This document shows, one piece after another, positions 15,090-57,243 of a stretch of 64,000 bases of DNA. This stretch comes from Vicugna vicugna (lineage: Eukaryota): NCBI GenBank assembly GCA_013265495.1, contig MU057809.1, positions 248,001 through 312,000 of the forward strand, given 5' to 3'. The notes under the pieces were generated by a model that did no database searches, had not been told where the DNA came from, and saw only the letters and a list, made by a program, of their open reading frames with translations. The number at the start of each line of letters is the position of its first letter. The first letter of the stretch is position 1. Made by a program: the position numbers and the translations under genes.

Positions 15090-17320
15090 ACGTCCAAGCC
15101 CAGATGGTTTCGCTGGAATTCTAGTAAACACTTAAAGAAGAATTAACACCAATTTTATACAGTCTCTTCCAGAAAATGGAAGCGGAGGGATCATTTCCCA
15201 GTTCACTCTATGAGGCGAGTGTTACCTAGATACCAAAACAGGAAGGAGGGAAGGAGAGAAAGAAGGAAGGAAGGTACGGAACAAAATCTCTCATAAATAT
15301 AAGTGCAAAAATCCCCCTCAGCAACATATAAAAAGAATTATAATGAAGCCCAGGTGGAGTTCACCGCAGAGAGGCAGGGCTGGTTCAGTATTCAAGTGTC
15401 AATCTGTAAAATCCATCATGTCAACAGGCTGAAGAAGAACATCACGTGCCCATGTCAGCTGATGCAGAAAAAGGATTTTACATCATTCAAGATTCATTCA
15501 TGATATACGTTCTCAGAAAACCAGTAATAGAGGAGAGGTTCCTCAGCTTGGTGGTAACATAAGACTGGGAACGAGACGGGGAGATCCACCCACCAGGCTG
15601 TTCAGTGTAGCACTAGAAGTTCTAGCCAGTGCAATAAAGCAAGAAAATGAAATCAAAGGCATTTGGATTGGAAAGGAAGATGTAAAACTGCCTATATGAA
15701 CAGACGGCATGATTGTCAACACCATGAAGATTCTGAGGAATCTACAAAATAACACCCAGAACTCGTAAGTGAATTTGGCAAGATTTAGGACACAAGATCA
15801 ACACACCAAAGTCAACTGTATTTCTATGCATTAGCAATGACTGCTTGGAAGCTAAAATTTAAAATATAACTCCATTCACAACTGCTCAAAGAAATGAATA
15901 CTTAGTTGTAGATCCGATAAAGCATGTACGGGATTTGTATGCTGAAAACAGACAGAAACTGAAAAATATTTTTAAAAAATCTGAATAATTGGAGAGACAC
16001 GCCGAGTTCACGGACTGGAAAGCAACACAGGAAAGAGTCAATTCTGCCCAACTTGAGATTCAAGTTTGATGCAATTCCTGCCAAAACCCCAGCAAGATTT
16101 TTCCAAGATTTATGTGGAAAAGGAACTAGAACAGAAGAATTTTGAAAAAGAATGAAGTGGAAAGAATCATTCTACCCGATTTCAGGACTGACTCTGTATC
16201 CAGAGTCATCAAGACAGTGTGGTGTTGATGGAGGAGACACAATAAATGGACAGAAAGGAACAGAGACTCCAGAAGCTGTCCCACATTAGCAATCTGATTT
16301 CTGACAAAGGTGTACAAGCAATTCAATGGAAGCAAGAGTCTTTTCAACAAATGGTGCTGGAACCGCAGGACATCCACGGGGAAAATGAACCCTGCATCAA
16401 AGAAGACACACAGATGGCAGATATGCACAGGAAGATGCCCCGCCTCACACGTCACCAGGGAAATGCAGATTAAAACAGCGAGGAGACACCACCCACTCCC
16501 GAACGAATGGACAAAACTGGGGACACTGACAACACCAAATTCTGTCAAGGATATGGAGCAATAGGAAGTCTTATCCATTTTCGGTGGGAATGCAAAATGG
16601 TACAGCCCATTTTGTAAGACAGTTTGGAGGTTTCTTTCAAAACTAAACAGACTCTTACCATGTGGTACAGCAATTGTGCTCCTTGGTACTTACCCAAAGG
16701 TCCACATGAAAACCTGCACACAAGCGTTTATNNNNNNNNNNNNNNNNNNNNNNNNNNNNNNNNNNNNNNNNNNNNNNNNNNNNNNNNNNNNNNNNNNNNN
16801 NNNNNNNNNNNNNNNNNNNNNNNNNNNNNNNNNNNNNNNNNNNNNNNNNNNNNNNNNNNNNNNNNNNNNNNNNNNNNNNNNNNNNNNNNNNNNNNNNNNN
16901 NNNNNNNCAGCCTGAACAGGCTGCATACTGTATGATTCCAACTCTGTGACCTTCTGGAGAAGGCAAAACTATGCACAGTGAAGAGACTGGGGGGAGGGAG
17001 GCGTGAGCAGGCAGAGCCCAGGGGGTGTTCAGGGCGGTGAAACTGGCCTGCATGACACGTCAGTGGTGGTTGCGTGCCACACATTTGTCCAGACCCATAG
17101 AATGTAAACACCAAGGGCGAGCCTGATGTAAAGTGTGGACTCGGGGTGACAATGATGTGTCCATGTAGGCTCACCAGCTGTAACCAATGTACCAGTCAGG
17201 TGGGGGCGTTAACAACAGGGCAGGCTGCACATGTGTGAGAGGGTATATGGCACATCTCTGCACCTTCCCCTCAAGTTTGCTGTGAGCCTAAAACTGCTCT
17301 AAAAACTAAAGTCTATTGAA
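15090..17320 (+). mobile_element. Degenerate LINE-1 (ORF2 3' part plus 3' UTR), spanning an assembly gap
   Basis: AT-rich L1 ORF2 remnants ('cagatggtttcgctggaattctagtaaacacttaaagaagaatt', 'aaatcaaaggcatttggattggaaaggaag', 'caattcaatggaagcaagagtcttttcaacaaatggtgctgg') and an L1M-type 3' end ('gtgagcctaaaactgctctaaaaactaaagtctatt'). No intact ORF. A purine-rich (GGAA)-like insert lies near 15240-15275. Confidence 0.9.
16732..16907. other. Assembly gap (176 N)
   Basis: Run of N inside the L1. Confidence 0.99.
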
Positions 17321-33214: not shown

Positions 33215-34216
33215 ATGTGGAGCTGCGGCCCTCTCAACGGCACGGGCGGGGGTGAGGACCAGCTCCTGTGCCCGCACGTCCAGCGGGCCCTGTCCGCCCT
33301 GTCCCTGCTCCACCTGGTGGTCGGTGTCCCGGTGGGCCTGGGCTACAACGCGCTGCTGCTCGCGGTCAACCTGCAGGACCAGGGCAGCATGACCATGCCT
33401 GATGTCTACTTCGCCAACATGGCCGTGGCGGGCCTGGTCCTCAGCGCCCTGGCGCCCGTGCACCTGCTGGGCCCTGGTGCCTCCGGGTGGGCCCTGTGGG
33501 ACCTGGGCAGCGCGGTCCACATCACGCTGCTCGTGCTGTTCAATGTGTCCTCACTGGTGACCCTGTACTCCACTGCCCTGCTCAGCCTGGACTGCTACAT
33601 TGAGCGGGCCCTGCCGCGCACCTATATGTCCAGTGTCTACAACAGCAGGCACGTGTGTGGCTTCGTCTGGGGCGGGGCGCTGCTCACCAGCTTCTCCTCC
33701 CTGCTCTTCTACATCTGCGGCCACGTGGCAGCCAGGCTCGCGGAATGCGCCAGGATGCAGGACACCGAGGCCGCCGACGCCATCCTGGTGCTCACCGGGT
33801 ACCTGGTGCCCGGCCTGGCCGTGCTCTATGCACTCGTGCTCCTCTCACGAGTCCGGAAGGCGGACACGCCGCTTGACCAGGACGCGGGGTGGCTGGACCC
33901 CTCGGTGCACAGGCTCCTGGTGGCCACTGTGTGTGTGCAGTTTGGGCTCTGGACGCCTCACTACCTGACCCTCCTGGGGCACACGATCCTGGCTGCGCGG
34001 GGCAAGCCCCTGGATGGGCACCACCTGCGGATGCTGCGCTTTGCCAAGGACCTGTCACGGTCCCTGGCCTTCGCCAGCAGCTCAGTGGTGCCGCTGCTTT
34101 ACCGCTACATCAACAGAAACTTCCCCGGCAAGCTCCGGCGGCTGCTGAAGAAGGTGCACCGTGGGCAGCAGGGCTGCGCCCTGGACCAGGCGGGGCCGCA
34201 GCAGGCGATGGCGTAG
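33215..34216 (+). CDS. GPR146: G protein-coupled receptor 146 (333 aa, single coding exon)
   Basis: [10 protein letters not shown]...[23 protein letters not shown]...[39 protein letters not shown]...LLYRY matches human/mouse GPR146. Acceptor ctctgcgctctccccacag| ends at 33208, 6 nt before a GCC-ATG start. Confidence 0.98.
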
Positions 34217-40485: not shown

Positions 40486-43400
40486 TCTACACGCAGAGGC
40501 GTCTTGGTGTCAAGGCAGGAAATGACAGCACCACCCCCGCCCTGGCGTCCGCTCCCCTGCCCTGTCTGTGGGTTTGAACAGGAAGTCTGACCGCTGGGCT
40601 CACCAGAAGGACAGTGCGTCCCGGAAAGGGGCAGTGGGGGGGGCCACTCCCCTCGATCCAGCTGTCACCAGTCTCCTGGCCTCCTCAGCATGAGGCTGGG
40701 GACACACAGAGAAGCAAGGCAGTGGGCAGTGATCTGGGGCGCGACTGACATGACGACCAACGCTGGTCGGACGGCCCACCCCCCAGGCGGACAGGTCGGG
40801 AGGTGGGGGGGTCAGGTGTCCTGTGCTTCGTGGGTGGGAGGGGGGTGTGACACTCCAGGCGTCAGGTGCACAGAGCACCCCCTGCTCCCGCCTCCCGGCT
40901 GGTGACTTCACCAGCTCCCACATGTGCGCCGAGGCGGTTGGGCCGCTGTGTGTTGGGGAGGGCGGACGCTGCAGGCCAGGAGGGAGGAGACGTGGCTTTC
41001 CGTCCAGGGAGCCCTGCTTCCTGCCCCCAACCCAGCCCAGAGCAGGCAGCCTCGGGGCACAGACGACCCAAGTGGGGAGGCAGTTCAGACCTGTGGACAC
41101 AGAAGACGCCAGCGCCCGGTGGGATGGGTGGGTGGCCTGGTGCTCACAGAAGGAGCCCCAGCAGTAAACGGACGGTGCGCCGAGGGGCTCCAGGCAGGCC
41201 CCGGGAACGGACAAGGGCAGGCCTTCTATGGGCGGGAGGTCACTTTGTCCACCAAAAAGCCCCTGACCTTCTGTCCTCACACTCGGAGCCGTCAGCTCAT
41301 TTACTGCTTAAACAGCTGCTCTGAACACGGGCGCCGTCACCGCCATCCTGCAGGGGGCGGCCGCTGCCCCCTGGAACCAGAGACTTGCCCTAGGGCCTCC
41401 CGACCCTGTGGGAGACTGGAGGTTCCGGGGAGATGGGCCTGTGGCTCTTCCAGGCGCTCAGAAACTTCCCCGCAAGGCTGGAAGGGTTCACAGGGAAGCC
41501 AGTTTTGCTAAGTCAGGCCTCTTGGATGGAAAAACCCCAGGGGCTGAGCTCGCAGGCGTGGAAGGCAGGCCAGCCCCCAAAGTGCAAGGCGGGGCTGCTC
41601 CTCCTGGGGGCCTGTCCTTCCTCCTGGGGAGCAGCAGCGGCCAGGGGACCGGGCCCTCCCCCTGCAGCCCGCCTGCTCCGCCACTCCGAGGGGCCTTACA
41701 ACAGTGAGCAGCTCCGTCACCTGCTCCCGACAGGAGGCACAGGGTGGAGGCCCACGGCCACCAGCTTCCAGCGCAGAGCAAGGCCCAGAGCTGCGGGACC
41801 TGGCTCAGACCCAGCGCGCCTTTTTTTTTCTTTTTTTTTTGCATTTCATATGTTACCCAGTTTCACATTCTCACGGGATCAGCGACTACAACAGCCACCT
41901 TGTCTCCCATGTCTGGAAACGGCAAGACAGCCACAGCTGCAGCCAAAGGCAAAGCGCTGACATGCTCATGGAACAAAAAAGATGCACAACTTTTCCTTCA
42001 TTTTTCTTAAACTCACGGCCGCCGCTAAGGCTCACTGCTGGAGAACGGAAACCCTCTTCCTCTTCATGCCTCAAACTCAACGGTAAACTTACCTGACAGG
42101 GTGGGCAGGTCTCTTCAATAATCAACTGCACACGCACACAAAAAAAACCCTTTATGATGCGTAAGTACCTTGTCATACGAGGTACAAAACTACTTTCACT
42201 TTTTGGTTGGTTTGAAGTTTGGAAAGAACGCGGGGCCACGGCAAGGGTGGGGTGGGCCATGGAGGGGAAGCAAAACGGGCGGAGGGAGGGCTTTCTGAAC
42301 GGCTGTTGGCCCATCTGAGGAGGCGGCGGCGGAGCCCACTCTGAAATGACCGGGGCAGGGGCCCGTGAGCCTCTCCCGCTCTGCGCTTGGCGGCTCAGGG
42401 TCCTGCACGGGGCTCCGGGTGACAAGCGACCTGCTCGCCAGCTCTCCTCCGGCGCAGCCCACACTCGCTGTCAGGACTGGGTCCTTCCCTGAGCTTGCAG
42501 GCTCGGGACGCCAGTGGAGGGTGGCTGGCCACGGGGTCTCACAGCATAGCACCTCGTCGCCCGAAAGCCCGAGGAGACCCAGGATGACGACACAGGCAGA
42601 GGCCCAGCTCCTCACCAAGCGCTGCGCGCCTCCCCCGCCTCCCCACACCCAGTGGTCCTCAAACGTCTGTGAGGCTTACCCCTGCAAGCACGCTCCAAAG
42701 CCGTGCTTGGACCCGGGGCTCTGGGAACAGGGTCCCCGGTCTCATCATCACACGTCACAGGACAGCGTGGGCAGCACAGCTGTAAGAGACGTTCAAACAC
42801 CAGGGCCCCCAGCAAAGCCCACCTGAGGCCCTGGGGCGTCCTTCACCGCCCTGGGGCCTCCGTGGGCTTCCCACGGTGCTCCCATGGGACATGCATGCTG
42901 TCAGGGACCCCAGACAAACTGGGTACCGCACAGGAAGACCCTCAGAGTTGGGGGCCCACTCTTGGGGGTTGGGTTACCCTGTCCTTGGTTACTCCCTCCA
43001 AAACTCTTCCCTGCCAGCTGCCCAGCCCACTCGGGGAGGTGGGGCGAGGAGGACCCCACGCAGAAAGAAGGGTGCTTTGGAACAGCCCCCTCCCCCGTCA
43101 GGCCAGGCCCGCAGGGCGGCAGGGAGGGGTCCCGGGCTCCACGTTCAGGACCCCCATTACCTGGCGTCCACTGGCTGTCACAGGGCAGAGGGAGACCCTG
43201 GGCACCCTGAGGGGAAGGGCAGACAGGTGGCGAGCACAGTCCCCTGTGCTGGGTGTGGGGCTTTGGGTCCCGTTTTAAGCTGCAGACGTTGCCAGCTTTC
43301 TGGGAGGGGCTGTCCTGTGGGCGAGCCAGCGTGTGGGGCGTGCAGGAAACCACTGGCCCAGGCACACACACTACTTTTTCTGTCTGCAACTTGAAGCCAG

Positions 43401-46400
43401 CTCCCTTCTAGGTCAATTCGGGTTTTTCTGGGTCACGTGGCCAAACCAAGTTTGCTTAAAATGCAGCGTGTGGTTTGAATGACTTAAGAGCGAATTCCTG
43501 TTTTCCTTCCAGTAAGCACAGAGCCCGGAAGGCAGGGTGAGCCCAGGGGCGGGAAGACGGTGCTGGACGGTGCAGCCTCGGAGGAGCGGGAGCTGGGTAC
43601 CCCCGCAGGTGAGCCACCCCCCCCCTCCCCTCTGGTCGCCTGTCTGCTTTCCAAGCCAAGGCTCTCAGCGTTCAGAGTGAGCCGGCAGACTGGAGCCAGC
43701 TTCTCTGAAAACGAAAGTCTGTCTCTGCTCGAAGTGGGTCCCAGTGGCAAAGAAAACAATCTGAAGTGAGCAGACTTCTCATCCCTGTCCCTGAGGGCAG
43801 GCGAGCAGAGGCCGCAGCTCTGTGTCCTGTAGACGAGGGAGGGAGCTGTCAGAAAGCAGCCAGCGCTGACTGGGTGTTGGGTTTTCCTTCCACGCAGAGG
43901 ACTGGGCGTGAGCCCTGCACAGGGAGGCCCCTTCCCGGCGGCGGCGGGGCTGCTCCGTGTGCCGGGGACGGGCACTCAGAGTGAGGAGGGCGGGAGGGAG
44001 CTGACCCACGCCCCACGTGCCAGGCTCACCTTGTCATGAAGCTGCTGGGTGGTAAACAGCCCGTCCGGGCGCCTGCTGTCACAGACCGGGAAGTGAGGCC
44101 CTGGGCGTCCCCTCGCAGCCAGGCCTTCAGCAACTCGGGTCGGGCTGGGCCTGGGCGGCGGCTCACCCAGTCCGCATGGACCTTGATTTAAGGCCTGGGG
44201 CCTCCCGTCGGCTGCCCCGTCAGCTCGGGAGAGGCCCGAGTGGTGACCGCAGGGCGGAGGAGTTCCCAGCAGCAGAGCCAGACGGGACTCGAGGTGGTGC
44301 TGGGAGGGCCCTGCCGGGAGGCACTGACCACGGTGGCCAAGGCTGGGCCCCTCAGGCGAGACCACAACCTGAAGCCACACTCTAGGACGCCGCTGTCAGA
44401 CACGGTCCCCTGGCTGGCACAGGAGGGCAGCATGGCCTGCCCGCACCCCCATCAAGACAGTGTACACGTGCTGTTAAACGTGCAGGGTGCGGGGCGGGCG
44501 GGGGGTGTCAGTGGCACTACGGTAATTATGGCAAGGACGCATCCGTGTGGAAGCGGGGAAACGCGAAATGGAGCGAGTGGCCCCGCTGGACCTGGAGCTC
44601 GCTCACAACAATACAGGTCTGACCAGAGAGCACCGAGTGCAGGGGAGGGCGGCCACGAGACGGCGGGACGCGGCCAGGTCTGCACGCCGGGGCTGGGAGG
44701 GGCTGCAAGGACCACCCACACCCACTGTGGACCCCTGGGGCCACGGGGACCGGCCCTTCTAACTCCGGTGAGGCAGAACCCGCTTCCTAGAGCCACTCTG
44801 AAAACTATTTAAGGAGCTGCAGCAGCGAACACAATGTTCTCGAGGCTCTGGCCCTGGGAGTCCCCTGGGAGGCTGGACCTTGGCAGCCCTTTTGTGTAGT
44901 TGAGGAAGGGCCCCAGAAGCCCTGGTCCTTGGCCTGAAACTGGCACCAGAACAAGATGGAGGCCTGTCCTCCCAGGAAACCCTGAGCCTCAGGTAAGAAC
45001 CTCCGTTTCTGCTGGAGCAGCGCAGGCATCAGAGCTCCCGGCTGGAAGGCAGGACAGACGGCCGTGCGGGAAAATGCAAGCAGTTTCATGTGAAGTTAAA
45101 CACTTACCCTGAGAACTGGCAGACCTGCTCTGCGTGCTCACCCAAGAAAAGAAAGTGCTCAAGTGAAAACTACATTCAAATTCTAAAAAGCAGCTTTATT
45201 CATAGAGTCAAAACCCCAACGTTACTCAAACGGAGTGGCCGTCCACACAGCAAGTCCTGCTCAGAGGTGAGGGGCCAGCCCTCTGCCAGGGCAGCATCAC
45301 AGCGGGTGCCAAGAACAGGTGCCTCACACGCCCTGGACGTCCGCAGGGGTGGAAAGGGACCACCAGGACAGGCACCGGGGTTCTGGGGTGCCCTGCGTGC
45401 AGGGGGGCTTGTGGGGCTGGATGTCCAGGCCCACGGCCCCATGGTCTAGGAGCAGGTCTGGACACTGGCCTGGACATCGCTCCATGACTCTCACCTCAGC
45501 TGGAAAGTGGTTTCACACGTGTACCTGCTTCGTGTGGAAAACCAAGGTCTGAGCAAACCTTCACACAGAAGGTGCTCCGACCTGTGCACGTGGGGACACC
45601 CCACGCGTGGAGACAGTTTGTCCACCATGGCCCCAACTCCTGGGAGCCCGTCTGCTCTCTCCTCTGAGGACCCCCAAGTCCACGGTCTCCCACCGGACAG
45701 CTCACACCGTGGGGGAGGACGACCCCGTGAAGCTGGAGCCCCTTTCGCCCCAAGGCAGGCCTGGCCTGGAGAGAAGCACTCAACTCGGCGAGGAGCAGGC
45801 GAGGGCTTCCGGTCGGCAGAGTCCGGGACGCACTCCGGGCCCAGCTTGGACTCGCGCCCTCCCTCCGCCTGGCTGGGCGACATGGGACGCGGGGCCCGCC
45901 AGCACATCAGGTCACACCCACAACTGGGTGGCCCCTGATAAAGAATGCCCCAAATGCCACCAGCAAGGACAAGGGCGTTTGCTCCAGAAGGCCTGAAATG
46001 CTGGCCAGCCTGAGGCTGTTTCCTGCACCAGGGTCAGTGGTTCACAGCATCTTCTTTCCAATTTGCCTTCATCAAGGAAACACTCCAAGTCACTTCCTCT
46101 CGGTCTGGCCACCAGTCCTAGGTGTGACGTCACTCAGGGAGTCACTGACCCCTGAGCCCCGGCAGGTGGAAGACGTCATGACCCCCTGCGGCACACGGGC
46201 CCCGCCACCCCCACAGGCTGGCGGGACGAGAGCAGGGTGCGCACGGGCACGGCTCTCCAGGAAAGCAAGCAAGCAGCCATGTCGCGGCAGACACAGGTTA
46301 GTCAGTGTTCATGTGGCACACGAGCCTGCCACACACACGTGTGCTGAGACAGCCAGCCAGAGGAGCCACGGTGGACCCACGTCTGCACAGACCCCCGCCC

Positions 46401-47124
46401 ACTGCCCGTGGTCACCATGCAATGGAGCCGGCCTGGCGCAGAGTGAGGACGAGCCTTGGCACACCCGCCGTAGGCTGGGGGCCCGTCCCCAGCAGGGGGA
46501 GCCACGCCCGCCTTTCAGCGTTTCATTGGGTCCGTCCCCAGTTTTTCCTGCTCGCAATGGCTTTGAACAAACAGCGGTGTGGTCTGCCAGCCTCGCCTGC
46601 TGTTTGGCTGAAATCTAAGGAGGGGGCGACATGTACACAGAAACGAGGTCTTTCCCGTGGCAAGGCCAGGCCAGGAGGGCTGAGCCCTCGCTCCTGGACT
46701 CCAGCTCTGAGCAGAGTCCCCACCAGTGGGCCAGAGCTGGTGACACCTGCAGTGCGGGCACTAGCCGCTCCCCTGGAGGGCAGGGGCCTGGGTGTGGAAA
46801 GCAGGACAATGGGCTCAGAACGGAAGCCCTAGCCCTCCTGCCTGGACACCCCCCACGGAAGGAACCCTGTTTGGGAGACAGGGGCCCGGCACACATCTGC
46901 TCCAGGGGCGGGACGGGGAAAGCGGTTTGTCAGCAATGAGGGGAGGGGGTGCTCGAGGGGTGGGGTGAGGAGTCTCCCCAGGATCCACCCCGCAGGGAAG
47001 ATGGCTGTTAATACCACGCCCCATGCCCTCACCCTCCGCGGGAAAGGGGGCAAGACCCAGAAATGTCTTTAACGAGGTCCCAGACTGTCCCAAACCCAGG
47101 GGGCAGCCTGACGCTAGGCCCACG

Positions 47125-47146
47125 TCCCCCGCTGCTTCTGTTCCAG
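47125..47146 (+). promoter_or_regulatory. Splice acceptor of the orphan GPCR coding exon
   Basis: Pyrimidine tract 'tcccccgctgcttctgttccag|' ending at 47146, 16 nt before the ATG. An in-frame TAG at 47115-47117 closes the frame upstream in genomic DNA. Confidence 0.7.
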
Positions 47147-47162
47147 GTGGGACCCGGCCGAG

Positions 47163-48152
47163 ATGAGCACCCACAACATGTCCTGGATCCGGTACCCAAG
47201 CCGCGTCTCCACGGCTGTGGAAGAGGTCATAGCCGCGCAGAGCCTCGTGTCCAGGTGCGCGCTTGTCTACACGGCACTGTTCCTACCGCTGAGCCTGGCG
47301 GCCGGGCTCTTCAACTTGACCACCTTTGTCCGAGGCCGCGCCAGGCTGCAGGGCCTGGATGCCTGCCTGGCGGACCTCACTGCCACTGGTCTGCTGGTGA
47401 CACTGCTCTCGCTCACAGCGATTGGCCGGCCAGACTACCTGGCCACGACCCACCTGGGCTGTGCCGTTCTGTCCCTCGTGTTCAACATCTGCTACTTCAA
47501 CGCGCAGTACGTGCAGGTGGCCATGCTCTCCGCGTTCCTGCTGCAGTGCCCGTCCTGCCTGCGCGCGGCCCCCCAAGGGGCCCAGAGGCCCGCAGCCAGC
47601 CTGGCCGCCGTTGGGGGCTGTGCCATCTGCAGCTCCCTGGGAGTGGTGGCCCTCCTGGGCACGTCCGGGGAGCTTTACGAACCCACTCTGTGCCAGGTGG
47701 ACCCACTGACCGCCTGGCCCGAGTACGAGATCGTGAAGGTCAGCCTGGGCCTCGGGCTGGCCCTCGTCCTGAAGCTTGTGCTCCTCACCCTGCTTGGCAT
47801 CCAGCGGGCTGGCTGGGCGGCTCTGCCCCTGGGGGACGCGGGCTCAGCTCACTGCTGGGTGGTTCTGGCCATCACCCTGGCCTCATTCGCCTGCCGCCTC
47901 CTCTACAACACCGCGCTTGTCCAGCGGGCCCGGCTGAAGCTGCGGAGGGACATCGGTGCCCCCCGGGACGAGCTGCTCATGAACCTGGCGGAGCTGGCCC
48001 TGTTTGGGGAGAGCTGTGCAATTGCCCTGGCCACCCTCCTCCTCCACCGGCCATGCAGGCAGGCCCTGCTGAGCCTCCCGGAGCGGCTCACCCAAAGGTG
48101 CCGGAGGAGAGAGGCCAGCAACAACTTCTCCCTGAATAGAGTGGGGAGTTAA
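47163..48152 (+). CDS. Orphan, highly atypical class A 7TM receptor related to GPER1/GPR146 (329 aa)
   Basis: Seven hydrophobic segments (about aa 32-56, 65-87, 99-127, 144-166, 190-213, 232-253, 271-294). N-terminal sequon N5-M-S; Cys100 (3.25) and ECL2 Cys177. Near-gapless manual alignment to GPER1 from this window ([59 protein letters not shown]). From recall, mouse has the uncharacterised C130050O18Rik at this syntenic position; not verified. Confidence 0.88.
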   Translation: MSTHNMSWIRYPSRVSTAVEEVIAAQSLVSRCALVYTALFLPLSLAAGLFNLTTFVRGRARLQGLDACLADLTATGLLVTLLSLTAIGRPDYLATTHLGCAVLSLVFNICYFNAQYVQVAMLSAFLLQCPSCLRAAPQGAQRPAASLAAVGGCAICSSLGVVALLGTSGELYEPTLCQVDPLTAWPEYEIVKVSLGLGLALVLKLVLLTLLGIQRAGWAALPLGDAGSAHCWVVLAITLASFACRLLYNTALVQRARLKLRRDIGAPRDELLMNLAELALFGESCAIALATLLLHRPCRQALLSLPERLTQRCRRREASNNFSLNRVGS

Positions 48153-49409
48153 GTCGGAGCCCCTACCTCCCAACACAAGCCACACAGGCCAGTGAGGGCC
48201 TCTTCCTGGCTCTGCCAAGACTCAGAGCGACTTGCTCAGAGTCAGCAGGGATGACGGTCTGTCTAGGAGGCACTTAGAAATCAGCTTGATGGGCAACTCA
48301 GTTTCTGCAAAAGCGAGACAGCTCAGCCCAAACCAACACTCACACCTGATGGAATGAGTCTGGAGGGGGCAGGTGCTGGCAACACACCTGACCCAGGCGG
48401 GAGGTTCTACCTCGTCTGCAAGCCGGCACCTCTCCCCCGCGCCAGCGAAGGGCAAAGAGGGAACCCTGAAAATAGAGACGTTATTTAGGTAACTTGATGG
48501 CCACACTATACTCTGGCCCTGAATGGCCAGGCTGGTTAACTTCCAGCACCGCCAGCAAGTGGGGGCAGTGCAGACGTCTCCAAAGGCTTGTTTTGTCCTC
48601 AAATGTACCACCCCTGGAGGTCTGAGGTCTGGTCCCCGTGACCTGGTGGACAGGAGGTGGCCGTCCCGGGGTGATCAGTGAAAGTGGTTTCCAAAGTCTC
48701 AGCTGTTCTGTTTGATGTTATCTGCAGAAAGTGAAACATCAGGATGCAGAGCATGGTGATCAGTCTCATTCCATTGTTGTCGCTGGCTTTATGTTAAGAT
48801 TCTCTTGGTTGACTAGAGCACAGAGACATGCAAAGAATGGCATCTCTCTGGCTGCATAAGACCTACACCTTTAATAGTTAAAAAAAAAAAAAAAAGAAGC
48901 TAGGACCTTACTTCTTTAGAGCATTTTTCAGACGCAGCAAAATTAGGAAATTGCCTGTTTGCCTCCTGCCCCGAAACATGCACAGCCACCCTCTCAAGGG
49001 GGTGCGACAGCCCATGAGTACGTGGACACGTCACCGTCGCCCAAGGCCTCGGGTAGATCAGGGTCCACCCTGGGTGCCGCCCATCCTGTGGTTTGGACAG
49101 AGGTACAACGGCGTGCGTCCTTCACTGTCCAATCAAATGGGAGAGTTTCGCTGCCCTAAAACCCCCAGCCCTCCGCCTGCAGCTTGACCCTGACCCTCCC
49201 CGGCGCCCGCCGAGCCTCTCGCTGTCTCCACAGGTCTGCCGTCTCCAGGCCACGTACTAGAATCACAGAGCGGAGCCTGGTCAGGCGGGCTGAGGCCACA
49301 CACTAAGGTGCAGCTTGGAAGCTCGCTTCTCTCTAACGCTGAGCGATACTCCGTTGTTGCGATAGCTTCTATTGTAGTGAATATTTTAATGTTAATCTGC
49401 AACCCAAAG

Positions 49410-49415
49410 AATAAA
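49410..49415 (+). terminator. Candidate polyadenylation signal of the orphan GPCR (AATAAA)
   Basis: First clear AATAAA I saw after the stop, in an AT-rich patch followed by U/GU-rich sequence ('agcttttgagtgttct'). Implies a 3' UTR of about 1.27 kb. Confidence 0.5.
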
Positions 49416-51689
49416 AACACAGCTTTTGAGTGTTCTCAGTACTGAGTACTTCTCAGTACTGATGTATTCGCATTCCTTATTTGGAAGGAAAGTGATTTGG
49501 ACCTTAACAGTCAGGCGGCTTCTGTAATACGCCATTAAAACACTCAATGCTTTTTACAGAGAACCCCCTTCTACGACTTCTTCGTTTACTCGCACGTTCA
49601 TAAAACCTTCCTGTGGCCTCTGTGCAGCACGCCCAGAGGAGGGCCTGGCGTGTCCCCGCCCACCTGGGCCAAGCCCGGGGCCGCGTGGGAAGGCCGCTTC
49701 TTCACGGACCATCACTGACGGCTAGACGCAGGCCCTGAGTTTCTTGCTGAGAACTTTAAGGAGCACTGAAGTTGGCTCGGGTGCGTGGGTTTCGATGAGC
49801 AGGCCGGCGGCATTCTTTGCAGAGCTGTGTTTGAGCCTTGTCAGCCGGGGTCTGGGGTTGCTGTAACACTCAGGTCCTGTCCGGGGCCCACCTGTCATGG
49901 TGAGTTCCGTGAGGATGGGTGAGGGCAGTGCCCAGCCCACCGTGGGCTCCTCAGAGCCGCCCCCAGCTCAGCGGGGGGACACCTGTGCTCTGTAGGCACA
50001 GGACTGGCCTGAGGTTCCAGGGGCGGCCACCCAGACCGAGGTCTGGGAGCTCCTTGTCAGCGTGGCTGCCTCCCTCCAGGACTGCCCGCAGCCTCCCAGA
50101 AAGCCCTCTCGTGCCCGCCCCCACCCCGCCCCCTTGCAAGGGGAATGCCCCAGGAAGGCAGGTGGGTGGGTCTCACACCTCCTTTCAGCAGCGGGAGCCT
50201 CACTTCAAGCAAGCCCAGAGGGAAACAGGGCTGCTCTTAAGGCAACAATACTTCAACAAAAAACAATAAACAAAGAAAATGGGCTGCTCTGGCTGGAGGG
50301 GAGGGTGAAGAGACAGACCACAGAGAGGTAGAGGGGGCACCCAGACCCCACCCCCCGGCCCACGGGCCTGGTCCACTCCCCCAGGCGTCCGTGACCACGG
50401 GACCTCAGGGAGCCATGGGAACATGCAGGCTTCCTGGCAGCAGGAGGGCGTGCACTCCAGGAGGAAGCCTGCATGACCCCCGGGCCTAAAGACAGATCAG
50501 AACTGACCTGGTCGGGTGAAGCCACTTCCCAGGGCCCCTCACCTTTCCCCAAGGACACCGCTGGGGGCCACCAAGGTGGGGCTGGGACAAAGACTGCTGG
50601 CATTCTGGAACATTCCACCCATAAACCCCCAGTGCTGGGCAGCCCCCCCAGGCAGCCCCGTGTTCTGGTGGCCGCCGGCACATCCTGCTCGGAGGGTTTG
50701 AGGAACCCGGCAACAGCCAAGAGGGCCCAGCTGCCGAACGTCAACACCAGCGAAGCTGCAGGCGGGAGACCTGGGGCACCGAACCCGCCCAGGACCCACA
50801 GGCTGTGCCCACGCCTGCACACGCACAGGACCGGGACGGAGCCCACAGCACAGGCCCAGGTGGCGTCCAGACAAGCTCAGTGAGGGACACTCCAGGAGCC
50901 GCCCTCCCCCTACAGGGCTGCCAGGCCCCGCACGCAGACACCACCTGGCAAAAGGCCCCGATGGAGCACAGCCCTCGGCCAGGGCATGCGCGAGGGGCCA
51001 GAGCTCTGGCCCAGGACCGCCGGGGCACTTGGTCAGCCTCACACGGAAACAGCACCCTCCTCCAGGCACAGGACGGTGCACCCTGCTCCCCCGACTCTGG
51101 ACATTGGAGAGAAGGCACAGACACCGTGCGTGAGGGGTCACCGCTGCAGAAGCAGCTTCTCTGAGGGCGCCGGCCCTGCCCCTGCCATGCAGCTGCGCGG
51201 GCTCCTGGCTCCCACAGCTGGAGCCTCACAAGTAAACCAAATCTCGCCAATGCTCCTCGCACACTGGACTGACACGAGTGCCCAGGGAAGACAGAGAAGC
51301 AGCTCCTGGGACCGACTCTGCTCACAGCTGATGGGCAGCACGGGACTGAGGAAGATCTGACAGCTGTGCTTCACTCTACTCACATCACCCGCGTCATGAT
51401 GAACACAGGGGCGCAGGAAGGGGGGATGAGGCCCAGGGCCACATGGCGTCAGTTCTGAGCGTCCCCACTGCACTGTGACCCACGGGGGGATTCCCACTCC
51501 TGGAGGGGAGGGCACAACACAGGCCCGGAGCCTCAGCTGTACTCGCGGAGGGGCTGGGCTGCGTTTGCAAATTTAAACACGTGGAGGCTGATCATCTAGG
51601 GTTCCCTGTGAGGAACCCAGGCACCGCGCTCCATGGAGGTGCCTACTCGGGATGGTTGGGCCGACGTGGCAAGTGCTGGTGTGGAGATG

Positions 51690-56134: not shown

Positions 56135-56178
56135 GGCCCCGCGCGAGGGGACGAGGCGTGAGCCCCGCGCCCGCCGGC

Positions 56179-57243
56179 ATGGAGACGCAGCTGGGCGCCT
56201 ACAACGGCAGCCCCGCGGGCCTCGACCTGCCCCGCGCGCTGGCCAACGGCTCGGGCGTGCTCTGGGAGCAGCAGCAGTATGCCATCGGGCTCTTCCTCTC
56301 CTGCCTCTACACGGTCTTCCTCTTCCCCATCGGCTTCGTGGGGAACATCCTGATCCTGGTGGTCAACATCCGCTTCCGGGAGCGGATGACCGTCCCCGAC
56401 CTGTATTTCATCAACCTGGCGGCGGCCGACCTCATCCTGGTGGCGGACTCGCTCATCGAAGTGTTCAACCTGGACGAGCAGTACTACGACCTCACCGTGC
56501 TCTGCACCTTCATGTCGCTCTTCCTGCAGATCAACATGTACAGCAGCGTCTTCTTCCTCACCTGGATGAGCTTCGACCGCTACCTGGCCCTGGCCAAGGC
56601 CATGCGCTGCAGCCTGTTCCGCACCAAGCCCCGCGCGCGGCTGAGCTGCGGCCTCATCTGGATGGCCTCCGTGTCTGCCACGCTGGTGCCCTTCACCGCC
56701 GTGCAGCTGCAGCACACAGAGGAGGCCTGCTTCTGCTTTGCGGACGTCAGGGAGGTCCAGTGGCTGGAGGTCACGCTGGGCTTTGTCGTCCCCTTCGCCG
56801 TCATCGGGCTGTGCTACTCACTCATCGCGCGGGTGCTGGTCTCGGCGCAGGGGCACCGGGACCTGCGTCCTCGCAGGCAGAAGGCCCTCCGCATGATCTT
56901 CGCCGTGGTCCTGGTCTTCTTTATCTGCTGGCTGCCTGAGAACGTCTTCATCAGCGTCCACCTGCTGCAGCGCCCGCAGCCGGGGGCCGCCCCCTGCCAG
57001 CAGTCCTTCCGCCACGCCTACCCGCTGACTGGCCACATCGTCAACCTGGCGGCCTTCTCCAACAGCTGCCTGAACCCCCTCATCTATGGCTTTCTCGGGG
57101 AGACCTTCAGGGACAAACTGAGGCTGTACGTCGAGCAGAAAACCAGCGTGTCGGCGCTGAGCCGCGTCTGTCACGCTGCCCTGAAGGCGGTTGTCCCGGA
57201 CAGCACCGAGCAGTCAGAGGTCAAGTTCAGCAGCACCGTCTAG
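56179..57243 (+). CDS. GPER1: G protein-coupled estrogen receptor 1 (354 aa from the first in-frame ATG)
   Basis: [31 protein letters not shown]...[25 protein letters not shown]...SFDRY...[16 protein letters not shown]...NSCLNPLIY...FSSTV is GPER1. The ORF track starts at GTG 56158; the first ATG is at 56179 (GCCGGCATGG, good Kozak). Confidence 0.98.

Follow-up and report, generated by a model that had tools for sequence, protein, structure and literature searches.

A divergent class A receptor-like gene between GPR146 and GPER1 in Vicugna vicugna, with arginine at position 6.48 and a single acid at the former sodium site

The locus and its transcript

A 64,000-nucleotide stretch of the Vicugna vicugna genome (contig MU057809.1, positions 248,001 to 312,000), referred to here as the window, was analysed around an open reading frame (ORF) at 47163-48152 on the plus strand. 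The ORF runs from ATG to TAA, encodes 329 amino acids in translation of the window, and has a GPR146-like neighbour on one side and a GPER1-like neighbour on the other. From the sequence comparisons given below it was assigned as the camelid orthologue of mouse C130050O18Rik and rat LOC102546864. A first-pass annotation had described the product as an orphan receptor in which every activation microswitch is lost and in which Arg245 (position 6.48 in class A numbering) and Glu283 (position 7.45) might form a compensatory charge pair. The analysis related this pair to a family-wide pattern in which Arg6.48 is accompanied, in nearly every member, by one acid at one of two sodium-pocket positions, consistent with a buried salt bridge.

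The camelid C130050O18Rik orthologue is a two-exon gene that is spliced and transcribed. Contigs of the unlabelled, RNA-like run X15 covered exon 2 in three pieces (47144-48468, 48467-49709 and 49706-49970), and an X15 contig carried 223 letters ahead of 47144 that mapped uniquely to 43576-43605, with a GT donor next to it. The spliced contig joins 43608 to 47147, with exon 1 being non-coding and the ATG lying 16 nt into exon 2. The sequence around the 3' end of the X15 contigs contained neither AATAAA nor ATTAAA. Runs X16 and X18 covered the stretch evenly and were DNA-like in appearance, and the full-length cDNA run X24 contributed no reads. Short X15 contigs were also located within the intron (45455-45907 and 46577-46826), and may stem from alternative exons, from intron retention or from exons of an antisense WKF-domain host gene.

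Codon-aligned comparisons of the window gene gave ratios of non-synonymous to synonymous substitution rates (dN/dS) of 0.32-0.45 against ass and warthog and 0.51 against Camelus ferus, the latter from 18 non-synonymous and 13 synonymous changes. The gene is under purifying selection, which is weaker than usual for receptors. A second ORF of 358 amino acids in another frame (47063-48139, plus strand) overlaps nearly the whole coding sequence (CDS). Its proline-, glycine- and arginine-rich product is as expected of a chance ORF in DNA of 65% GC content.

Identity and range of the family

A search for orthologues of the window protein was widened by a profile search of 1.84 billion representatives and by an alignment-seeded search. 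In the first of these, sixty-three mammalian relatives from placentals, marsupials and the platypus were recovered with 53-95% identity, E-values of 1e-193 to 1e-97 and coverage of 98-100%, including the Camelus ferus orthologue (95% identity) and proteins named RIKEN cDNA C130050O18 (62% identity). No primate sequence was present among the 63. Mouse C130050O18Rik and rat LOC102546864 (59-62% identity) occupy the same Gpr146-Gper1 interval and carry the same hallmark residues as the window protein. The rodent genes have been described as encoding a predicted G-protein-coupled receptor-like protein of microglia and most tissue macrophages that is Csf1r-dependent and depleted in the Csf1r-knockout brain; most vertebrates, primates excepted, have a 1:1 orthologue (PMC7941205). 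C130050O18Rik was also among the genes whose expression fell in RAW264.7 macrophages that had taken up Brucella (PMC3716731).

The gene is already annotated, yet uncharacterised; no functional study of C130050O18Rik was found in the searched literature. The same literature held nothing on its motifs, its kinship to GPER1, Arg6.48 as a hallmark, the one-acid pattern and its relocation, or the extracellular conservation bias described below. Queries for Arg or Lys at 6.48 returned FlyBase release numbers only.

Outside mammals, sauropsid members were found in birds, crocodilians, turtles, tuatara and squamates, and amphibian members in all three orders (caecilian, salamanders and frogs). Fish members included bichirs, sturgeons, paddlefish, gar, bowfin, osteoglossomorph and percomorph teleosts, and one shark. 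A single-sequence search with a sturgeon protein returned sturgeons and paddlefish only, and an alignment query reached birds, reptiles and amphibians. The family is present in every jawed-vertebrate class sampled, with an intact ORF in approximately 200 vertebrate species. A search of the Atlas yielded clusters of the family itself and generic class A receptors, and nothing else. A minus-strand WKF-domain (C7orf50-like) gene hosts the family gene within an intron in camel, ass, warthog, gar and shark, and this nesting from gar and shark to mammals supports orthology across the jawed vertebrates. As a host-guest arrangement held from shark to mammals, the nesting is unusually long-lived.

Names attached to these proteins in public records were untrustworthy. 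Orthologues were listed as 'OPSD/OPSG protein' in birds, as a 792 amino acid 'GP146 protein' in alligator gar, as 'GPER1 isoform X2' in a bat and a manakin, and as 'C3a receptor' in bowfin, and gene models fusing family members with GPR146 or GPER1 also occur. Six fish and shark members (P0068, P0069, P0070, P0074, P0075 and P0076) share the motif NRNI(M/I)xPxIEI after helix 8, within the C-terminal 30 residues. Tetrapod members lack this motif, which may be a trafficking or binding signal that was lost in tetrapods.

Fold and relation to GPER1

Pfam gave no match to the single window protein even at E<=10, 7tm_1 included, and a precomputed PF00001 match was available for some orthologues. The best solved match of a profile built from 36 orthologues was to GPER1 chains (8xof_R, E 3.7e-8), followed by CXCR2, CXCR1 and the B1 bradykinin receptor (E up to 1e-2). 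An hhalign comparison with the window's own GPER1 ORF (56158-57243) gave a probability of 84% over 246 columns. Kinship to GPR146 beyond the shared fold was rejected after the comparison with ORF 33215-34216, where the probability was 1.5%.

The AlphaFold2 model made on the 36-orthologue alignment contained seven helices and helix 8, with a mean predicted local distance difference test (pLDDT) score of 73.4 and a predicted template modelling (pTM) score of 0.69. It was matched to class A receptors by Foldseek (probability 1.00, template modelling score ~0.6) and by VIA-align (Z ~20-21 over 250-290 residues). Most of the top structure matches were inactive-state structures, which is a weak hint only as to conformational state. 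The window protein is thus modelled as a class A seven-helix receptor, and sequence matching places the family as a divergent class A member with GPER1 nearest.

Features shared with GPER1 are the class A fold, the disulfide between transmembrane helix 3 (TM3) and extracellular loop 2 (ECL2), Cys6.47 and the Ser7.46-Cys7.47 motif. The partners of the disulfide, Cys100 (3.25) and Cys177, were invariant in all 196 sequences of the family alignment, on which the motif and conservation counts below are based. GPER1 is also a neighbour on the same strand, approximately 8 kb downstream. Nearest sequence kinship together with adjacency would suit a GPER1 paralogue formed by tandem duplication. In contrast to the window protein, GPER1 has N1.50, D2.50, DRY, CWLP, N7.45 and NPxxY and couples to G proteins. 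Identity between the two proteins is only ~15-23%, and their nearness is a matter of sequence match rather than of a tree with class A outgroups.

Loss of class A motifs

The residue register obtained from the profile alignment to GPER1 and from hhalign was the same, and it reproduced the manual alignment of the first-pass annotation. In this register Gly48 is at 1.50, Gly76 at 2.50, Ala-Phe-Leu at 3.49-3.51, Gly152 at 4.50, Ala200 at 5.50, Cys-Arg-Leu-Leu at 6.47-6.50, Glu277 at 7.39, Glu283 at 7.45 and Ile-Ala-Leu-Ala-Thr at 7.49-7.53. A check of the codons placed all of the residues in question where they had been numbered (G48, N51, G76, A124-F125-L126, G152, K192, A200, K204, C244-R245-L246-L247, E283 and I287-A-L-A-T291). 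None of the seven hallmarks (N1.50, D2.50, DRY, W4.50, P5.50, CWxP and NPxxY) is present in the window protein, and the proposed loss of all activation microswitches was accordingly borne out.

Asn1.50, DRY, Trp4.50, Trp6.48 and NPxxY were found in none of the 196 family members, Tyr5.58 was found in no class, and P6.50 is lacking throughout. The only survivors at the level of the family are Asp or Glu at 2.50 in fish, frogs and salamanders, and Pro5.50, which was kept by every non-mammal class and lost by mammals alone. The loss is ancient and not a decay specific to the camelid lineage, because no orthologue keeps DRY or NPxxY; orthologues retaining these motifs had been set beforehand as grounds for abandoning the annotation's view. 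The Ile-Ala-Leu-Ala-Thr segment is in part an extra camelid-specific loss, as Asn7.49 was present in 39 of 52 placentals and absent from camelids. At 2.50, Gly occurred in 7 of the 52, the camelid lineage included, and Asn or Ser in most mammals.

Arginine 6.48 and the sodium-pocket acid

The class A sodium pocket is lined by positions 2.50, 3.35, 3.39 and 7.45, with 6.48 listed alongside these, and the usual class A residue at 7.45 is Asn (PMC6037435). Counts at these positions were made on 197 sequences. Arg6.48 was found in 182 of them, from shark to mammals, and the segments carrying 2.50, 6.48 and 7.45 align without gaps. Both Arg245 and Glu283 were invariant in the mammals sampled (60/60) and nearly so in sauropsids, in agreement with the conservation that had been expected of a functional pair.

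The acid differed in location between groups. In mammals (60/60), nearly all sauropsids and the caecilian, position 2.50 is neutral (Asn, Ser, Gly or Tyr) and 7.45 is Glu. Frogs, bichir, sturgeon, paddlefish, bowfin, gar and osteoglossomorphs have Asp or Glu at 2.50 and Gly or Ala at 7.45, and salamanders have Glu or Asp at 2.50 and Gln at 7.45. Glu7.45 was therefore confined to amniotes and a caecilian. Among the 182 Arg-bearing sequences, 141 had an acid at 7.45 only, 39 at 2.50 only, one at both and one at neither, so that 180 carried exactly one acid. This pattern supports a buried Arg-acid bridge whose acidic partner was transferred from TM2 to TM7. Salamander Gln7.45 could become Glu by a single nucleotide change, a hint that the transfer passed through a stage with acids at both sites.

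By its distribution Arg6.48 is much older than Glu7.45. The two residues therefore did not arise as a joint replacement of a lost ion site, since ray-finned fish, frogs and salamanders combine the old Arg with an acid at 2.50 only. The compensatory pair of the first-pass annotation is in this respect modified, with the one-acid relationship retained and the joint origin set aside.

Fifteen sequences were without Arg6.48 and had His (ten), Cys (three), Ser (one) or Leu (one) in its place. Five sequences had no acid, and four of these had also lost Arg6.48. Two of the four were otherwise little changed: Hemicordylus (Ser6.48 and Met7.45) had none of 32 other family-conserved positions altered and Porphyrio (His6.48 and Gly7.45) had one of 32. 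The others were two much-diverged percomorphs with Leu or His at 6.48, Gln2.50 and no acid. These copies, P0076 (Ophioblennius) and P0080 (Synchiropus), were altered at 10-14 of the 32 family-conserved positions besides losing Arg6.48 and the pocket acid, and may be gaining a different function or decaying.

Distribution of conservation

Eight residues were identical in 196/196 sequences, namely S83, P90, C100, C177, D180, Y188, K192 (5.42) and E277 (7.39). Averaged over the outer side (helix halves plus extracellular loops), conservation was 0.64, against 0.48 on the inner side with its helix halves, intracellular loops and tail (Mann-Whitney p 7e-12). The outer side held 33 of the 40 most conserved positions, and the intracellular loops were least conserved (0.34). 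This extracellular bias suggests that what has been conserved is binding outside the cell and not an interface with a transducer.

Of the two TM5 lysines to which attention had been drawn, only Lys192 (5.42) was invariant, and Lys204 varied among K, Q and E within mammals. Helix 8, Cys313 and the junction of TM7 with helix 8 were conserved. The C-terminal tail of the window protein is short with few Ser or Thr, and the N-terminus before TM1 has approximately 25 residues, including one Tyr and two Glu.

Coordinates and other features of the window

The positions of the gene, its exons and the residues discussed are collected in Table 1. The GPR146-like ORF (33215-34216, plus strand; 7tm_1 E 4e-14) and the GPER1-like ORF (56158-57243, plus strand; 7tm_1 E 1e-49) are both single-exon class A receptors. 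The true ATG of the GPER1-like ORF probably lies downstream of its listed GTG start. At 16732-16907 there are 176 consecutive N, an assembly gap or a masked stretch.

Table 1. Positions in the window of the C130050O18Rik orthologue, its exons and its key residues
Feature	Position	Strand	Evidence or remark
Non-coding exon 1 (5' end approximate)	43383..43608	+	Donor cag/gtgagc at 43608/43609
Intron, GT...AG, 3538 nt	43609..47146	+	Donor gtgagc at 43609; acceptor ttccag ends at 47146
Exon 2: 16-nt leader, whole CDS and ~1.8 kb 3' untranslated region (3' end approximate)	47147..49970	+	
CDS, 329 amino acids and stop, orthologue of mouse C130050O18Rik	47163..48152	+	Translation, orthologue search
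Gly48, 1.50 (Asn in ordinary class A)	47304..47306, GGG	+	Family G/S/T/A, never Asn
Gly76, 2.50 (sodium-site Asp in ordinary receptors)	47388..47390, GGT	+	Asp/Glu in fish, frogs and salamanders; neutral in amniotes
Cys100 (3.25), disulfide partner of Cys177	47460..47462	+	Invariant, 196/196
Ala124-Phe125-Leu126 for DRY (3.49-3.51)	47532..47540	+	Profile and hhalign register
Gly152 for Trp4.50	47616..47618	+	Family-wide, Trp absent within 4 residues
Cys177-Lys192, ECL2 to top of TM5, most conserved block	47691..47738	+	Cys177, Asp180, Tyr188 and Lys192 (5.42) each 196/196
Ala200 for Pro5.50	47760..47762	+	Pro in all non-mammal classes
Cys244-Arg245-Leu246-Leu247 for CWxP; Arg245 (6.48) family hallmark	47892..47903; Arg245 CGC 47895-47897	+	
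Glu277 (7.39), invariant pocket residue	47991..47993	+	196/196
Glu283 (7.45), single sodium-pocket acid of amniote orthologues	48009..48011, GAG	+	
Ile287-Ala-Leu-Ala-Thr291 for NPxxY	48021..48035	+	Profile and hhalign register

Comparison with other receptor systems

A basic side chain in the sodium pocket has a precedent in CCR7, CCR10 and CXCR6, which belong to the same broad branch of class A and place Arg7.45 by the acid at 2.50 (PMC6037435). In those receptors the arginine is on TM7 with Gln6.48 and the acid is on TM2, and DRY, NPxxY and signalling are kept. In the window family, by contrast, the arginine occupies the toggle-switch position on TM6 and the acid of amniotes is on TM7. Transfer of a TM2 acid to TM7 within the same polar core is known from the reciprocal Asn2.50/Asp7.49 swap of the gonadotropin-releasing hormone receptor, which differs in that the position is 7.49 and not 7.45, no arginine is involved and the receptor signals fully.

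The first-pass annotation had also suggested a decoy or scavenger of the atypical chemokine receptor type. ACKR1-4 are seven-helix proteins of the same branch with a damaged DRY, no classical G-protein signalling and a link to immune cells. They keep most other motifs, however, and have long acidic N-termini for chemokine capture and His7.45, whereas the window family combines a short N-terminus of ~25 residues with Glu, Gly, Ala or Gln at 7.45 and retains almost none of the motifs. Chemokine receptors as a group are marked by His (or Arg) at 7.45 (PMC6037435). With Glu rather than His or Arg at this position, an N-terminus of ~25 amino acids and far deeper motif loss, the likeness was poor. 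For the annotation's other proposal, a heterodimer or trafficking partner of GPR146 or GPER1, the only pointer is that the genes are adjacent.

Interpretation and rival explanations

The explanation that we favour, by a modest measure of confidence, is a buried Arg-acid bridge acting as a conformational lock in a protein that binds through its outer pocket without canonical G-protein activation. The guanidinium group of Arg6.48 would enter the former sodium pocket and form a buried salt bridge with Asp or Glu at 2.50 in fish, frogs and salamanders and with Glu7.45 in amniotes, which in the window protein would be Arg245-Glu283. The tethered cation would link TM6 to TM2 or TM7 and fix the bundle in one inactive-like shape, which would explain why the downstream G-protein switches became dispensable. 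The outer pocket (Lys5.42, Glu7.39, Tyr5.38, the ECL2 Asp and ECL3) would bind a ligand or partner on cells of the macrophage lineage, and this binding would proceed without canonical G-protein activation. A broader account is held more tentatively, at rather less than an even chance. It proposes that Arg6.48 is the permanent cation of the sodium site, its counter-charge having shifted from TM2 (Asp/Glu2.50) to TM7 (Glu7.45) towards amniotes under a one-acid rule, in a locked and G-protein-silent family of macrophage binding proteins that is ~450 million years old and was lost by primates.

Several observations weigh against the bridge and the lock. In the single shark sequence Arg6.48 stands without an acid at either 2.50 or 7.45, Glu7.45 was kept beside Cys6.48 in three sequences (tuatara and two of passerine type), and ten sequences carry His6.48. 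By mutual information with average product correction (MI-APC), the 2.50/7.45 pair ranked 124th of 52,650. Clade-defining pairs ranked higher, and for that reason MI-APC was not counted as specific evidence. Independent contrasts on the FastTree tree numbered four, none of them in the opposite direction, with p >= 0.25, a test that is underpowered. The move from 2.50 to 7.45 may have been a single event on a long branch with many unrelated changes, and the Asp2.50 of fish could be merely the ancestral class A residue, unrelated to Arg. Arg6.48 might instead be directed upwards, to the invariant Glu7.39, or hold an anionic ligand. A receptor without these motifs could still couple to G proteins or arrestin, and a dN/dS of 0.3-0.5 is high for a receptor.

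These points are in part those of an explanation that we judge unlikely, in which Arg245 and Glu283 are unpaired and separately conserved, Arg6.48 serving an anionic ligand or Glu7.39 in an ordinary ligand-gated receptor of unusual chemistry and Glu7.45 or Asp2.50 being a leftover or an independent polar core residue. It would be in keeping with the shark Arg that has no acid, the retention of Glu7.45 beside Cys6.48, the non-significant tree-based tests, the centring of conservation on the outer pocket, and the invariance of Glu277 (7.39) and Lys192 (5.42) in 196/196 as against 182/197 for Arg245. It does not readily account for exactly one acid in 180 of 182 Arg-bearing sequences with both in only one, for the appearance of Glu7.45 just where the 2.50 acid vanishes when the usual class A residue there is Asn (PMC6037435), or for Hemicordylus and Porphyrio, which altered both residues with their other conserved positions almost unchanged. 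Under a further alternative the protein signals through G proteins or arrestin in a non-canonical manner, and the Arg-acid bridge is a lock breakable by ligand, that is, a new type of activation switch and not a permanent staple. The conserved helix 8, Cys313 and TM7-helix 8 junction are compatible with this, the relatives GPER1 and the chemokine receptors do signal, and a conserved outer pocket implies a ligand. The intracellular loops are nevertheless the least conserved part of the protein (0.34), DRY, Tyr5.58 and NPxxY occur in no class, and the C-terminal tail is short with few Ser or Thr, and we regard signalling of this kind as improbable.

It is barely credible that the camelid gene is a relic in decay or without function, or that its ORF arose by chance in GC-rich DNA. 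Such a reading could draw on the missing Pfam match for the single sequence, the dN/dS of 0.51 against Camelus (18 non-synonymous and 13 synonymous changes), the camelid loss of Asn7.49 with Gly at 2.50, and the overlapping 358 amino acid ORF in another frame. The window protein, however, has 0/32 family-conserved positions changed, its transcript is spliced, intact orthologues exist in ~200 species from shark to mammals with the nesting conserved, and dN/dS is below 1 in all pairs. On the splicing, the ~200 intact orthologues and the dN/dS values below 1, the pseudogene or chance-ORF reading is refuted as far as sequence analysis goes. The earlier view that a folded bundle is under selection, as opposed to random decay, was upheld by the ~200 intact ORFs, the dN/dS of 0.32-0.51, the spliced transcript and the predicted class A fold.

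Significance

If the buried Arg-acid bridge is real, the family would be a natural experiment in which a tethered side chain stands in place of the allosteric sodium ion, and would provide a class A receptor for which every downstream activation switch is dispensable. It would then be directly informative on receptor state and its control by the sodium pocket and the 6.48 toggle. For ligand finding, concrete targets are offered by Lys5.42, Glu7.39, Tyr5.38 and the ECL2 Asp, all invariant residues of the outer pocket. On mouse and rat macrophages and microglia the family represents a so far unstudied surface protein that primates lack, and its absence in primates matters for the transfer of rodent myeloid biology to humans.

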